DNA of 63,130 nucleotides, counting the filler, from Dugesia japonica (taxonomy: Eukaryota), in the NCBI GenBank assembly GCA_001938525.1. It is 5 parts of 5 records of this genome, joined end to end, with 100 filler letters (N's around TTAATTAATTAA, not from the genome) between each part and the next. Parts side by side here need not be neighbours in the genome. Positions count along the whole stretch, not along the records: positions 1 to 18,405 come from MQRL01615109.1; 4 more parts are not named here. The stretch is one strand, 5' to 3'. Positions 255 through 10,464 of the stretch are shown here, piece after piece. The notes under the pieces are model-generated. The model did not search any database. It was not told the DNA's origin and worked only from the letters and a program-made list of their open reading frames with translations. Within the stretch, counting starts at the first letter, position 1. Every line of letters starts with the position of its first letter. Made by a program: the position numbers and the translations under genes.

Positions 255-3200
255 TGATACTAGATAAATAGATAGATGCTCCACCAACAAAAAACAAAAA
301 GAAGATGTTATCACAAAAGGTGCAATTAAGGTGGAATCTCATAATTTAAGATGATTGGACCAATTTTCAAATCATAGATGAAATGGATGAAGAAGATATT
401 GTCATGCAAAGTTTTATGGATGAAGAAGAAGCACAAGTTGGTGGCTCCCTCAATGAAGATGTGATAATAGAAAGTGACTTATTTAAATGTCACCAGATAA
501 AAAAATGGATGTTTCAAGGTAGATTACGAGAGAAATTTTTTTACCAAACTCTTTGATTGAGCAGTAAATTCAAAATTATTGGAGAATTAAAAAATATCAA
601 GATCCAATTCAGAATAAATGTTGAATTCGAAAAAGAAGACGAAACAAAAACTTGTAGATTATCCAATCGAGCTGTTCCATTGAGCGATTTGTTTTTCAAA
701 GATGGAATTAAACAGTTAAATGAGAAGATAGCTATACAAAGTTAGCTCGGATCTAGTTGGATACTGAGTTGCATATTGGAAGTAAATTTTAAAATCACAA
801 AGGTATCTGATATTAACCAATTATCTCGTCATAGTTATATATCAACCCTAGAAACCTTTATAAGAAAAACGCAATTTTAAATATTCAGAACAGTGACAAT
901 AAATGTTTTATATATATTATCTTGGCTATTCTCAAACAAGATAATTTTAGAGATAATAAATGTAGGGTCTCTAATTATCAAAAATACATATACGAGCTTG
1001 TATTCGACGTAGCGGATATGCCAATGAAGCTTGCAAATATACCAAAATTTGAAAAGCAAAACCCGGGCTTATTAATTAATATTTTCTCTTAGAATCCTCA
1101 ATCCGTGGAGGAAGATGATGATGTTATCATGATGCATCCGAATGTAGACATTATACATCGGTCTAAATGCGATGGAGAAAAGATCAATTTATTGTTATTG
1201 GAAGATGCCAACAAATCTCATTACACTGCAGTAATGAATTTGAAAAGATTGATGAAAAGAAATATTAAAAAGGGTGGTCTAAGAATACAATCAATTTGGT
1301 GAGAAAATTGTCTCAATGTATTCAAGGATAATACGCCTTACAAGACTCATTAGCTAATTTGTGAGAAAATTCAGACGGACACCACATTATACAAAATGCT
1401 GACAGAAAAGAATCTAGAATTTCAAGATTACTCGAAAAATATAACTCCACCCTTTGTTATATATGCTGATTTCGAATCAGTATTACAAAGCGGCGAAAAG
1501 CATTTCCAGAAACATTTACCCGTTTCAGCTGGACTATTGTTGGTAAATAATTTTACCAATGAAGTCAAATACGTCCAGTTTATTGGAAATGAATGTGTAC
1601 ATGAATTCTTAAAGTCATTTAAGGAAATCAGTAATAATATGGTACACCCATATTATATTATAGAAGGAAAAAAGAAATGAATTATGAACCCAGACCAAGA
1701 AATGAAATTTAAACATAGTACAATATGTCATTTGTGCAAAATATTTTTATATAAACTCTTCATTGGATGCAGCAGTCAAATCCTTAAAAGAGGCACCTTT
1801 GACAACAAATGAATTTAAAGATAGCAGAATAACAATGTCAAAGTGGATGTTTCCTTATAATTTTGCTACCAGTTTGGAAGTTCTGATTGAAACAACAACA
1901 ATGCCACCAAGATGGGAAAATGTTAGTGAGCAAGATTATTAAAAAGCAGTGAANNNNNNNNNTATAACAGGATGCAACAATCTATTGGATTATATGCTAG
2001 TATATTTGAAACTAGATGTGTTTTTGTTAGCCGATTTCTTTCAACAGTTCAGAAATAAATCATTGGCACACAATAATTTGGAACCATTAACATTCTTTGG
2101 TAGCCCGAGTATGAGTTGGGCATCTGCATTGATGTCATTAAATGAGTTCATTGAATTGTTGACTAATAATGATATGTATATATTTTTTGAAGGGGGTGTA
2201 AAAGGCGGACTAACATTTGTAAATAAACACCATGTTTTTAGTAATGAAAACACAGATTTATTACATATAGATATTAATAATCTTTATGGATAGGTATTAA
2301 GTCAGAAATTGCCTTATGCCGATTTCCAGTGAGTATATACTGGATCGGATTCAGTATTGAAAAAATGTAGAAAAGGAGATCACCATATGGATACACATTA
2401 GAATTTGATATGGTTATACCAGTAGAAACCCAAGACGAACTGAATGATTTATCTGTTACAGCAGAACGTCGAAGTGCTCCAGGTAGTAAGGTGATAAAAT
2501 TAATGCTGACTTATTACCCGAAAAAAAATTATGTCATACATTGAAGATTGTTGCAAATCTATTTGAAATCAGGTGTACAGATAACAAAGGTACACAGGGG
2601 TGTAAAGTTCAGCCAAGCATCTATTTTCAAACAATATATAGATGTGAACACTAAATAAAGATCAGAATGTAAATAAGAGTTGGAGAAGAATTATTTTAAG
2701 CTTTTAAATAATAGCCTGTATGGTAAAACAGTTGCAAATTTAAAGAAGAGATTGAATCTAAGCTTGTGTATTTCAACTAAACAATTGATGACATACACGT
2801 CAAAAGCTGGATTTTGAAAAAAATCAAAAATAGATGATGATCTAATAGCTGTTTGGTTGAACAAAGAGATTATTTGTTTGAATAGACCGAGCTACATCGG
2901 ACAGTCCGTAATGGACTTAAGTGAGTTAAGAATGTACCAATTGGGTTGGAAAAGTACAGAAAAGAAAATAAATGCGAGATAAATATTGAAGCCGGTGATG
3001 CGCATAGTTTTTTATGGAGATTAAGAACATAAAATTGTAAAAAACTAACCATCCAATTACAGCACAAGTCATCCCCTTTACAGTAACAGTTTAAATTCAG
3101 TAGTTAGAAAGTTCAAGGGTGAGAGTAAAAGGAAGAAATATCAGGAATGGATATTTTTGAGATCGAAGTGTTATAGCCTACTTAGCGAAAGAGAATCAAT

Positions 3201-6400: not shown

Positions 6401-7661
6401 ATTGTAATAGAAATAAAATAATCTAAGATTTAGATCACAAACAAGTGCTTATTTATCTTTTTATTGTGTTGTTATATTATCAATCATTTTTTATGTTATT
6501 TTAATAACACATGCGTTTAAACAAATTTGCATTTAAAACTGATTTCGATTTATCATAAATGTTTAAAAGAAAATTCTTTTTAAAATCATGATTATTTTCC
6601 ATATTAGTTATTTCGTAAATTTTGAGAGAAGAAAATTAAGATTAGATTTTCCATATTGGAGTTTTTTATGCATTTTTCAATATGGTCAAATGATTTCAAT
6701 TTTTAAATTAAACTATCTACATTACTTTTAATATTGATAGTTTTGTTACTATTTACTTCATTTAAGTACTTCATTTCTTGCTTGAATATTATGATATTCA
6801 TTATTACCAAAATGTTTACTTGTCAAAAGTTTTGTTTTCTACATTTTTTTGGTAATATATTTATCCATTTTAATTCATTTCTTTATTGTTAAACTTGGAA
6901 ATAGAGTTCAGAATAAAATATATTTATTCAACAAAAATGGTACTGTAACAAATATCTATAGTTTTTGAGGAATCGGCTATATAATAACGTTTGAGCACTC
7001 CAAATTTACACACATGCATTTACTTATTATCAAATATATATAAAAATTTATCTTTGCATATAGAAATATTATACAACTCTTAGTTATATCTCACACTTAT
7101 AATTGTGTTTTATTATTTCTTATTTTAATTTAATTATCCGTTTTATTTTTATTTCATTTACCTTTATATGTAAAAGGATGAAAAATGCAATAACGGTCTG
7201 TGATGCCTTTAGATGTTTTATTATTAAATTTTTATTTCTATATATGCGTCCTTGGTTTAAATTAAACACTGAGTAGCCATGTTATTTTCATTAATCTATT
7301 AATTTTTTATTGATTTTTTCTAGTTTCCCTAGTTTTGTTTTTTAATTACCATAATTATTTACAGAAAGAAAAATGTATCTGAGCCTTAATCGTCATATCA
7401 TTCAAAATTGTTTTTATCTTGATATTAGATTTCTAATTACAATATGACAACTAATTTTATTTTTATAATTTATTGTAGATTTTTTACGATACATAAATTA
7501 AACATTAAAACCAAAAATATTTTTAATTTGAAGCTACAATCTGATTTCAATGTGTTTAAATAATTCAAAGAATTGATTATATATTCAATATATTTTACAT
7601 CAGTTTCAAATATAACTATTTTACGTGACTATTATCATAGATTTCTAATCGATATATTTTA

Positions 7662-8561
7662 ATGGCTGTAGTCTCAGAAAGTGATTTAAGAGCTTTTGGA
7701 ACCATATTAAATGATGGAAATAAACCATTAGTTGAACGCTATCGTGCATTACGTAGTATGAAACAATCGAAAAGTGATTTGGCTATTGACTTGATTACTC
7801 AATGCTTTTCAAGTAAATCAGATTTATTAAAACATGATTTAGCTTATGCTCTTGGTCAAATGGCTAATGAACACGCAATAAAAGTTCTTAATGAAATTCT
7901 CGATAATGAAAAAGAAGCCCCAATTGTACGGCATGAAGCTGGCGAAGGATTAGCAGCAATTGGGCATGCAGATTCAATTGACATATTGAAAAAACATAGC
8001 AAATCATCGAATAAGGAATTAGCTGAAACATGTTATTTAGGTTATAAAAGAATTGAGTTTTTTAAAAATCATAAATCTCATGTCCCCCCTAATGAATTTA
8101 AGTCCATTGACCCAGCTCCTGAATTTGAAATTAATGAAAAGTCAGTGCATGATTTAAGCGAAATTATATTGAATCCTAAAGCAGATATTTTTGATAAATA
8201 CCGAGCTTTATTTACATTAAGAAGAGTAGCTCATTCAAAAGGAAACGATGCTCATGCTGCATTAACTGCTATTGGCAAAGCATTGAAATGTCCAAGTAGT
8301 GCACTTTTTCGACATCAAGTTGCATTTGTAATTGGCCAAATTGGAAATCCGGACTCAATTCATGTTTTAGAAGAAGCAATAGGAAATCTCTCTGACTTGG
8401 GAATGGTTCGACATGAAAGTGGTGAAGCTTTAGGAGCGATTGGAAATGATAAATGCAAAGAAATTTTGCATAAATATCTTGATGATAAAGTTCAAGTGGT
8501 TAAAGAAACATGTGTTGTAGCTCTTGGAGTTCAGGATTACAATTCTTCTGAGCACTTTTAA
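7662..8561 (+). CDS. DOHH: Deoxyhypusine hydroxylase-family HEAT-repeat di-iron protein, intronless CDS, with HD/HQ replacing two HE motifs
   Basis: Intact 299-aa ORF with LLKHDLAYALGQM, PIVRHEAGEGL, SIDPAP linker, YRALFTLR, LFRHQVAFVIGQI, MVRHESGEALGAIG and VVKETCVVAL. Confidence 0.93.
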   Translation: MAVVSESDLRAFGTILNDGNKPLVERYRALRSMKQSKSDLAIDLITQCFSSKSDLLKHDLAYALGQMANEHAIKVLNEILDNEKEAPIVRHEAGEGLAAIGHADSIDILKKHSKSSNKELAETCYLGYKRIEFFKNHKSHVPPNEFKSIDPAPEFEINEKSVHDLSEIILNPKADIFDKYRALFTLRRVAHSKGNDAHAALTAIGKALKCPSSALFRHQVAFVIGQIGNPDSIHVLEEAIGNLSDLGMVRHESGEALGAIGNDKCKEILHKYLDDKVQVVKETCVVALGVQDYNSSEHF

Positions 8562-8829
8562 TTAATTCAATTTATTGATCTGTAGCTTGTTGAAAATTAG
8601 AATTTATTAGAAAAGGAATCTCATAAACTATTGCGCAATTGTCATTTAGTCTTTTTTCGGCTTTTTTACTAATGGTATCGTCTAATTTTCATGATATTAA
8701 ATAAATTTATTATTTGTTCCTTTTATTTATTAATATCGAAACTTTTATTTTTAATGTACAAAAATTATGAAAGTGATAATAAAAATGGAAATATAAGATA
8801 TGAAAACTTATAAATTAAATACAATAGAT

Positions 8830-9036
8830 CAGTGGCGTAGGGATGGGGACGGCGCCTATCTTGCCACGGAGGCCACTTGTAGAGGGTCACTGAATGGTCC
8901 CCAAGACTTTCTGCGTCAAAAATTTAGTTTTTTTTGGTGTAAGATAAGCGACTGATAAAGTTTGGAAACCACTGCTATATTTATTACTACATTTTTTTCG
9001 GGAATGGGGGTGCCAGTTAATCTCGCTGCACCACTG
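8830..9036. mobile_element. hAT-type MITE
   Basis: Ends CAGTGGCGTAG...CTGCACCACTG; 8-bp flanks CAATAGAT / CAGTAGAT (7/8 match). Confidence 0.75.
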
Positions 9037-10464
9037 CAGTAGATGGAATTGTTGAAAAGTTATTGCACTTTTTTTGGAGAATGTGTTAAAGTAATCAATA
9101 TAAAATTTAAGTGTTACAGTTTTAAATATATTTGTAAATAAAAAAATCAAACAAAAACTTCAGTTTTTTGCATAATTATAAAATAATTTTGGGGAATCTT
9201 TTATTGATTTTAGCAAGAATTCTGCAACTAATTAAAATAATTTGATCATTGATTTTCTGATTTAAAAGCAAATCAGAAGGTTGTCAAGTATTGATTTTCA
9301 TATCTGAATGTTAGACAGGATAAACTCAACACCATTCCAATGTCAAATTTGTTTATGAAACTCAATAATCTCATAGTACTAAGGGTGTCTGCATACAATC
9401 TTATTTTAATTTTAATTAACCAATTATAANTAAACATTTAGTTGACTGGATTATTAATATTTTAATCACTAATTTATGTATTGTTAAGTTCATATTGGCT
9501 ACATTTTCATTAGAATTATTTTTGCTTTTTAGTAATGAATAAACTGAAACTAATTTTTTTTCTTACGAATCTTATTAATGTTAAATACTTAGTCTGCATG
9601 TTACATAAAATTTTAAGCTAAAATATGGCTTGAAAAATATTTAATATGTTCACGTCGTGCTGATTTCTTGCAATCCGAATTTATTGCATATGTCTGGAGA
9701 TATGTTAATGTGGCTATTAACCGACATTAAGAGTATCTGCACCTTTTTGGATTCTGTTACAATAACGGTTTTCAACCTATCTGGTGCCACACTCCTCGAT
9801 AAAACTTCTCAAGTTGTGGTGACACTTAGTAGTAAAATTAATTTCATTGCCTCTGCCTATGTAATTTTGTTACTCTTATGAATGGAAATATAATAAAAAT
9901 ATGAAATTCGGAGTAAAATTTTATTCTAACAGATCTAATATAGTTAAATAATAATTATTAATCATAATGTTGGGCTTCGAGGCTTTTCTACTAAATATGC
10001 AGTCTTATTCAGTTGAATTCTTGTTTACTTCTTTCTATTTATTACTGTCACCGGGGCATACCCTGGAACCGCAAGTATTACCGAAAAAATATTCGTTCCT
10101 TCTATTCCCAATTCAGCGGATCTTTGTGATAACCCGTTTTAAGATTAAAATTTAAGAATTAAAACATATTAGTTTGTTAAGGTTATATTCACCGAGCTCC
10201 TCTTATCTTTATAAATTAATTATAATAAATTACATTTGTTAGTTATAATAATATCAATAGTTTTATAGTCAAAATGAAATCAGTTTTTAGTATACAAAAT
10301 TTATTGTTAATACAACTAAGTACAATTAACTTACAAACTTATTGAACAAATTTTGTGATCTGAGATAAATATCGCATTTATCGGATGTTCTGGATTAAAT
10401 CTTTTCTTTTATAATTGAACCAAAGTATTCAATAAAATAACGTAGTCATTTAATGCTTTAATTT

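Follow-up and report, generated by a model that had tools for sequence, protein, structure and literature searches.

A transcribed, selectively maintained DOHH paralogue with His-Asp and His-Gln motifs in the Dugesia japonica genome assembly

The window analysed here (a stretch of 63,130 nucleotides, filler letters included, joined from five parts of the Dugesia japonica assembly GCA_001938525.1) carries a gene for a homologue of deoxyhypusine hydroxylase (DOHH), which completes the hypusine modification of the translation factor eIF5A; in this homologue, the four motifs that are His-Glu in the enzyme read His-Asp, His-Glu, His-Gln and His-Glu. Our results clearly showed that this gene is a lineage-specific DOHH paralogue, transcribed and maintained by selection, in a genome where a canonical DOHH is encoded separately. 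On balance, the job of its product may well have diverged from ordinary deoxyhypusine hydroxylation, towards that of a HEAT-repeat diiron oxygenase whose substrate pocket has been remodelled.

In the prevailing view, DOHH is a single-copy, single-substrate enzyme with four strict HE motifs, and hypusine occurs on one protein only. The review by the group that characterised the enzyme describes the four HE motifs as strictly conserved, with H56, H89, E90, H207, H240, and E241 as the diiron anchors of human DOHH, and with E57, E90, E208, and E241 plus two glycines as the residues that bind the deoxyhypusine side chain (PMC9117371), and E57A has been used as the inactive DOHH control in mouse cells (PMC4107325). 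Our literature searches found no DOHH paralogue with altered motifs. According to the primary mutagenesis papers, the E57A and E208A changes are said to abolish substrate binding completely, and Kang and co-workers reportedly found in 2007 that only Asp substitutions at E57 or E208 retained partial activity.

The gene, its predicted fold and its transcript

The open reading frame comprises 299 codons with no internal stops and ends in TAA (Table 1). The only Pfam matches of the encoded protein are HEAT_2 and HEAT_PBS repeats, its alignment with human DOHH (PDB 4d4z) runs end to end (E 2e-59, residues 3–296, ~40% identity), and all its neighbours in the ESM Atlas are labelled DOHH. An AlphaFold model, built on an alignment of 52 sequences and with a mean pLDDT of 94.9, contains 16 helices in two blocks of eight with a loop between them, and superposes on 4d4z with a TM of 0.91 and an rmsd of 1.7 Å; the predicted fold is one of eight HEAT hairpins in a 4+4 dyad. 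By homology and by these eight HEAT-like hairpins in two symmetric halves, the protein belongs to the DOHH family. A predicted complex of the protein with one of the eIF5As of the same assembly (L005) obtained a score of 0.02, a value that speaks neither for nor against an interaction.

An earlier note on this gene had given its coordinates, residue numbers, and motif order (HD, HE, HQ, HE), all of which were found correct from the ORF and from the alignment to 4d4z. The note had also described the six iron ligands as kept, and H58, H91, E92, H218, H251, and E252 are indeed aligned with the human ligands and conserved, which by alignment would supply the six diiron ligands expected of a functional DOHH. 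Such an enzyme is also expected to have His-Glu at its four motifs and all six deoxyhypusine-binding residues. Here, motif 1 is His-Asp (codon 59, GAT at 7836–7838) and motif 3 is His-Gln (codon 219, CAA at 8316–8318), and four of the six binding residues are kept, namely E92, E252, and the conserved G65 and G225 (equivalent to human G63 and G214), with Asp in the place of E57 and Gln in that of E208. The claim that both substrate glutamates had been lost was right in that both positions are changed and overstated in its wording, as the Glu to Asp change in motif 1 keeps a carboxylate, one methylene shorter, and only Glu to Gln removes the charge.

Table 1. Features of the DOHH paralogue gene, in window positions
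Feature	Position	Strand	Basis
Unspliced transcript, ~1.02 kb, 5'UTR ~45 nt, 3'UTR ~75 nt	7613..8636	+	RNA read starts 7613–7619, ends 8634–8636
TACGTGAC, candidate cis-element in the 5'UTR	7622..7629	+	TACGTGA core conserved in the 5' flanks of L002 and L004
CDS of the HD/HQ DOHH paralogue, 299 aa + TAA stop	7662..8561	+	ORF, Pfam HEAT_2 and HEAT_PBS, E 2e-59 to 4d4z, AlphaFold model
Motif 1, K-H58-D59-LAY, CAT GAT	7833..7838	+	D59 opposite human E57; D in all four HD-type clade members
Codon 63 (Ala)	7848..7850	+	Cys at this column in 98% of other DOHHs; clade members have A, T or S
Motif 2, R-H91-E92-AGE, canonical	7932..7937	+	Opposite human H89-E90, iron ligands
Motif 3, R-H218-Q219-VAF, CAT CAA	8313..8318	+	Q219 opposite human E208; Q also in P0001 and P0002
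Motif 4, R-H251-E252-SGE, canonical	8412..8417	+	Opposite human H240-E241, iron ligands

One search found the stretch in 20 public runs from 10 studies, and reads from three raw RNA runs (two studies) and one DNA contig run were aligned to positions 6800–9400. These reads are 95–99% identical to the window sequence and thus derive from another strain. The window gene is transcribed, with an RNA depth of 200–770 over the CDS and of zero on both sides of the transcript, and no splice joints were seen across it in the reads of the three RNA runs within 6800–9400. Nearly all first mates of the two stranded oligo-dT libraries map to the minus strand, which means that the RNA of the gene is plus-strand. 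In the part of the gene unique to the window copy, a quarter of a 7-Gb run gave a depth of 200–250, and very rough arithmetic puts expression at ~100 FPKM. The strain differences listed in the CDS comprise 19 synonymous and 8 non-synonymous ones and no indel, and among those listed (13 less-supported ones lie outside this set) none touches codon 59 or 219. The earlier note had named GAA at both codons as a reading that would speak against its description; RNA and DNA runs, obtained independently from another strain, concur on the two codons and confirm GAT and CAA.

Scans of the window against Rfam and for tRNAs gave no matches. An interspersed repeat lies 200 bp beyond the end of the transcript, a GC-richer segment of ~200 bp at 8830–9060 with at least 138 candidate copies in the genome (70–84% identity), corresponding to no Rfam family and matching no tRNA. 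In addition, the broken frames at 1396–2293 bear a weak resemblance, below the threshold, to organellar/viral type-B DNA polymerase (PF03175, E 0.006), and this region is probably a decayed Polinton/Maverick-like element.

Genomic copies, relatives and selection

A six-frame search of the genome assembly (854 Mb in 648,594 contigs, ~27% GC around the window gene) identified three DOHH loci, each of them one single open frame, and a DNA search of the genome found no copies beyond these three. Besides the window gene, contig C578455 (L003) encodes a protein of 310 aa, 57% identical to the window protein and with four ordinary HE motifs, and contig C342972 (L002; CDS 1498–2397, minus strand) encodes one of 299 aa that has 77% identity with the window protein, His-Asp at motif 1, and a motif 3 that falls within a run of N. 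The canonical gene on C578455 bears out the view of the earlier note that the window gene is a paralogue and not the sole housekeeping copy, and the three loci dispose of the possibility, raised there too, that it might be the only DOHH in the genome. That note had proposed a search for a canonical DOHH and for further HD/HQ paralogues; the genome yielded the former, and a second HD copy whose motif 3 is masked by the N run. A housekeeping orthologue would be the sole or direct descendant of an ancestral gene present in one copy and would have unchanged motifs, which is not the case of the window gene. Copy counts in this assembly are to be read with care, since a match to eRF1 domain 2 was found on four contigs (C384392, C384393, C438888, and C462665) with identical scores, which points to a redundant assembly (haplotigs or recent duplicates).

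The copy in L002 is a composite in its similarity to the window gene. Its first 270 nt are 67–76% identical to the latter and the remainder 92–100%, with dS dropping from 0.88 to 0.09 between the two. At the protein level, residues 1–95 are only 65–68% identical to every other HD/HQ protein, and residues 96–299 are 96% identical to the window protein. The pattern suggests, from these sequence comparisons, an old duplicate whose 3' two-thirds were homogenised later by gene conversion. L002 is also transcribed, as reads that diverge from the window right past the stop codon continue into a match of the L002 3' flank, and L002 reads probably add to the depth at 8105–8540. Regarding the canonical protein L003, no exact match to it was found in public assemblies. 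A pyrimidine-rich stretch ending in TTTAG lies directly before its ATG and looks like a splice or trans-splice acceptor, and no such acceptor-like site precedes the ATG of the HD-type genes.

Just downstream of the transcript start of the window gene, 33 nt before the ATG, the 5'UTR contains TACGTGAC, a motif that occurs once in the 18-kb part of the window that carries the gene, against 0.09 expected. Its TACGTGA core is found at the same relative place upstream of L002 and in L004, a contig of another species, and the motif is absent upstream of the canonical DOHH (L003). It resembles an E-box or a hypoxia-response core (RCGTG) and may be considered a candidate element.

A word-index protein search revealed two further proteins with the HD/HE/HQ/HE pattern, P0001 (86% identical to the window protein) and P0002 (73% identical, encoded on the 1347-nt public contig L004), as well as a canonical relative, P0003 (78% identical to the canonical copy of the genome). 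The remaining matches of this search were animal DOHHs at 40–47% identity, and animal proteins were the best matches of both DOHH and eIF5A. Two scans of metagenome contigs found no further HD/HQ genes, and the four HD-type proteins are the only ones, among the 120 best matches and the three genomic copies, without HE at every motif. In a maximum-likelihood tree, these four form one clade (support 99), sister to the canonical pair of the lineage (support 92), with the six together supported at 100, and by this topology the duplication is lineage-specific and predates the split of at least three species. The dN/dS between the window gene and L002 is 0.19, and the comparison with L004 gave a dN of 0.19 with dS saturated; these values, ~0.2 or lower for the window gene, indicate purifying selection. 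Phylogeny and dN/dS were among the checks that the earlier note had proposed, and both the separate sister clade and the low ratio agree with a paralogue under constraint.

In view of these data, it is scarcely credible that the window gene is a decaying retrocopy or pseudogene, or an artefact of assembly or sequencing. An intronless ORF, the transposon-like DNA polymerase B fragment and the interspersed repeat nearby, and the fragmented, redundant assembly could be taken in that sense, but the ORF is intact and abundantly transcribed, the RNA and DNA reads of another strain have the same two codons, dN/dS lies far under 1, and the identical motif pattern recurs in two other species. Moreover, the canonical DOHH gene and others are likewise intronless, with single open frames for the canonical DOHH, for the two deoxyhypusine synthase (DHS) and two eIF5A genes described below, and for the eIF6 and eRF1 matches. 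The genome looks intron-poor, and the intronless state of the window gene is thus uninformative; the "possibly a retrocopy" of the earlier note finds no support in a feature that is equally present in all these genes. A processed retrocopy was rejected, as the parent-type canonical gene is itself intronless and the sequence beyond the 3' end at 8636 has no A-run that could be a poly(A) remnant.

The substituted pocket and the rest of the hypusine pathway

In order to place the two substitutions within the family, 95 near-invariant columns were defined on 117 other DOHHs. Seven of the 95 are changed in both clades of the lineage and three only in the canonical pair, and six are changed only in the HD/HQ clade and in all its members (F27Y, E59D, C63 to A, T, or S, E219Q, S283T, and D289G). 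The window protein keeps 72 of 92 near-invariant columns. Both columns of the substrate-anchor glutamates are among the six clade-specific ones, for which the probability by chance, calculated post hoc, is ~0.003. Residue 63 follows D59 by one helical turn and faces the same side of the helix as the G65 equivalent, and, judging from helix periodicity, the C63 position probably lines the same pocket as D59. The C-terminal QYA tail, too, is missing from the HD/HQ clade.

When 1.84 billion cluster representatives were searched exhaustively with HMMER, 248 members of the family were recovered at E <= 1e-30. In 136 of the best 150 of these 248, all four motifs are HE, the rest being mostly fragments. 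His-Asp at motif 1 combined with an ordinary motif 3 was present in at least four unrelated clusters among the same 150 (P0258, P0318, P0353, and P0355, the first being Steinernema glaseri A0A1I8AQ13, annotated as DOHH), and His-Gln at motif 3 was present only in the cluster of the window protein itself. The Glu to Asp change at motif 1 is recurrent and so probably tolerated, and with His-Asp in DOHHs of unrelated taxa Glu57 is not universal, despite the motifs being described as strictly conserved. This weakens the interpretation of the earlier note, which had seen in the pair of substitutions a neofunctionalised paralogue, since only the Glu to Gln change at motif 3 is special to the clade.

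The recurrence of Asp at motif 1, which alone is compatible with an ordinary DOHH, is one of the points that would fit a working DOHH isoenzyme, for which the Asp/Gln pair suffices, perhaps by way of a co-changed eIF5A loop, with the two copies differing in expression or in the eIF5A they serve. We regard this as a possibility to be kept in mind, albeit a doubtful one. None of the six iron ligands, E92, E252, or the two glycines has changed, nor has any other pocket residue named in the literature, and the gene is under strong sequence constraint and highly expressed. Nevertheless, Gln at motif 3 is found in none of 148 other family representatives among the best 150 of 248, which marks a position normally under absolute constraint, and replacement of E208 by alanine, like that of E57, is said to abolish substrate binding; in the mutagenesis attributed to Kang and co-workers (2007), only Asp substitutions reportedly kept activity. 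The canonical copy has also been kept alongside, which would be unexpected if the HD/HQ form were equally good. Two further considerations count in turn against a diverged role: Gln matches Glu in size and could yet form a hydrogen bond with an amine, and the HD/HQ copy is more conserved between species than the canonical one (86% versus 78% identity, with shorter branches, assuming that P0001 and P0003 belong to one species), which could mean that it is the main enzyme.

The other components of the pathway are duplicated too. Two intact eIF5A genes, encoding proteins of 134 and 133 aa with 64% identity to each other, were found on contigs C544471 (L005) and C303926 (L006), besides degraded copies. 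Both eIF5As lack the usual N-terminal extension, and in both the hypusine loop is KTGKHGSAK, with Ser for the second His of the usual KTGKHGHAK. Among the 120 best eIF5A matches, 115 carry the usual loop, and the five with the Ser loop are short eIF5As from environmental or transcriptome sources that sort as orthologues of one or other paralogue, at 72–89% identity; these five are from the same lineage as the window gene. A search of the literature for the KHGSAK loop found no report of it. Hydra was considered as the source of these genes and rejected, its eIF5A being only 61% identical. Two DHS genes, 68% identical, are present as single open frames on contigs C598611 (L010) and C478656 (L011); L011 keeps the SWGK catalytic-lysine motif, and L010 runs off the contig before that point. 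As far as their sequences tell, eIF5A, DHS, and DOHH appear as old paralogue pairs in the lineage, at 64%, 68%, and 57% identity, respectively, a parallel that would suit an isoenzyme, as would the KTGKHGSAK loop of both eIF5A paralogues, which might compensate for the altered motifs. A simple whole-genome duplication behind the pathway pairs was considered and set aside, with eIF6 in one intact copy and eRF1 copies that score identically, although two genes are too few to settle the matter.

In the reading that we lean towards, that of a diverged role, the window protein would still assemble the diiron centre and activate O2, and the two-glutamate clamp that holds the amino groups of deoxyhypusine would be remodelled by Asp59, one methylene shorter, and by Gln219, of the same size but uncharged. 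In the N-terminal half, the shorter carboxylate and the smaller neighbour residue that replaces Cys would leave more room, and in the C-terminal half the uncharged amide would mean one negative charge fewer. The altered clamp might then suit a side chain that has one cationic group less or differs in charge or length, or else deoxyhypusine in another register. There would be a division of labour, with the canonical copy performing the ordinary hypusine step and the HD/HQ copy a diverged oxygenase role, which might target one of the two unusual eIF5A paralogues of the lineage. A bolder version, which we hold to be unlikely, has two parallel hypusine-type circuits in the lineage, with the HD/HQ enzyme marking one eIF5A differently (at another position, on another side chain, or in another oxidation state); if true, this would be the first enzyme of the DOHH fold whose substrate or product is not hypusine.

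Changed substrate anchors next to kept metal ligands, which stabilise the structure, might also be expected of a pseudoenzyme, whose metal site would serve in folding or in iron/O2 sensing, or which would bind eIF5A without modifying it, as a regulator or chaperone. The same pathway offers a precedent in trypanosomatids, where a dead DHS paralogue activates the active subunit (PMC3663545), but the analogy is loose, as DOHH is not known as an oligomer. The RCGTG-type motif TACGTGAC, present in the 5'UTR of HD-type genes only, gives at most a very weak hint of separate regulation. We consider a pseudoenzyme quite improbable, because the six ligands, E92, E252, and both glycines are conserved in at least three species, beyond what folding alone should need, and because the substitutions are slight and near-isosteric, not destructive.

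In conclusion, the window paralogue, with its metal site kept and its substrate-clamp pair changed, constitutes a natural test of the roles of the glutamates and of the substrate range of the DOHH fold, and should it prove to be an ordinary DOHH, Gln would be tolerated at the E208 position. The duplication of DHS and eIF5A, the short eIF5As (133–134 aa), and their deviant loop raise the possibility of a diversified hypusine system in at least one animal-like lineage. These results are relevant to the hypusine and diiron-oxygenase fields, with the function of the window protein put forward as a hypothesis built on sequence.

Comparison with known systems

With human DOHH (4D4Z/4D50; orthologues Lia1 in yeast and nero in Drosophila), the window protein shares ~40% identity, the dyad of eight HEAT hairpins (TM 0.91), the six iron ligands, E90, E241, and the two pocket glycines. 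It differs from the human enzyme in having Asp for E57, Gln for E208, and a small residue for the Cys one turn after E57, in the further changes F27Y, S283T, and D289G, in the absence of the QYA tail, and in being encoded by a paralogue alongside a canonical copy.

The canonical protein of the same genome (L003) and its orthologue P0003 are much nearer, as a sister clade at 57% identity that has in common with the window protein a set of lineage-wide substitutions and a four-residue insertion, and the L003 gene is likewise intronless. Unlike the window protein, L003 and P0003 have four HE motifs and the usual state at the six clade-specific columns, and L003 lacks the TACGTGAC motif in its 5' region.

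The Glu to Asp change at the E57 position is also found in Steinernema glaseri A0A1I8AQ13 (P0258) and in P0318, P0353, and P0355, whose motif 3, in contrast to that of the window protein, stays His-Glu. These proteins are only 35–41% identical to the window protein, from which it follows that the change arose independently in them.

Finally, duplicates of hypusine-pathway enzymes that acquired other roles have precedents in a different enzyme family; for DOHH, our literature searches revealed no comparable case. Plant homospermidine synthase, which derives from DHS, is a duplicate with a new metabolic role. As for a regulatory role, the dead DHS paralogue of trypanosomatids (PMC3663545) is likewise a duplicated enzyme of this pathway and also belongs to a family other than that of DOHH.
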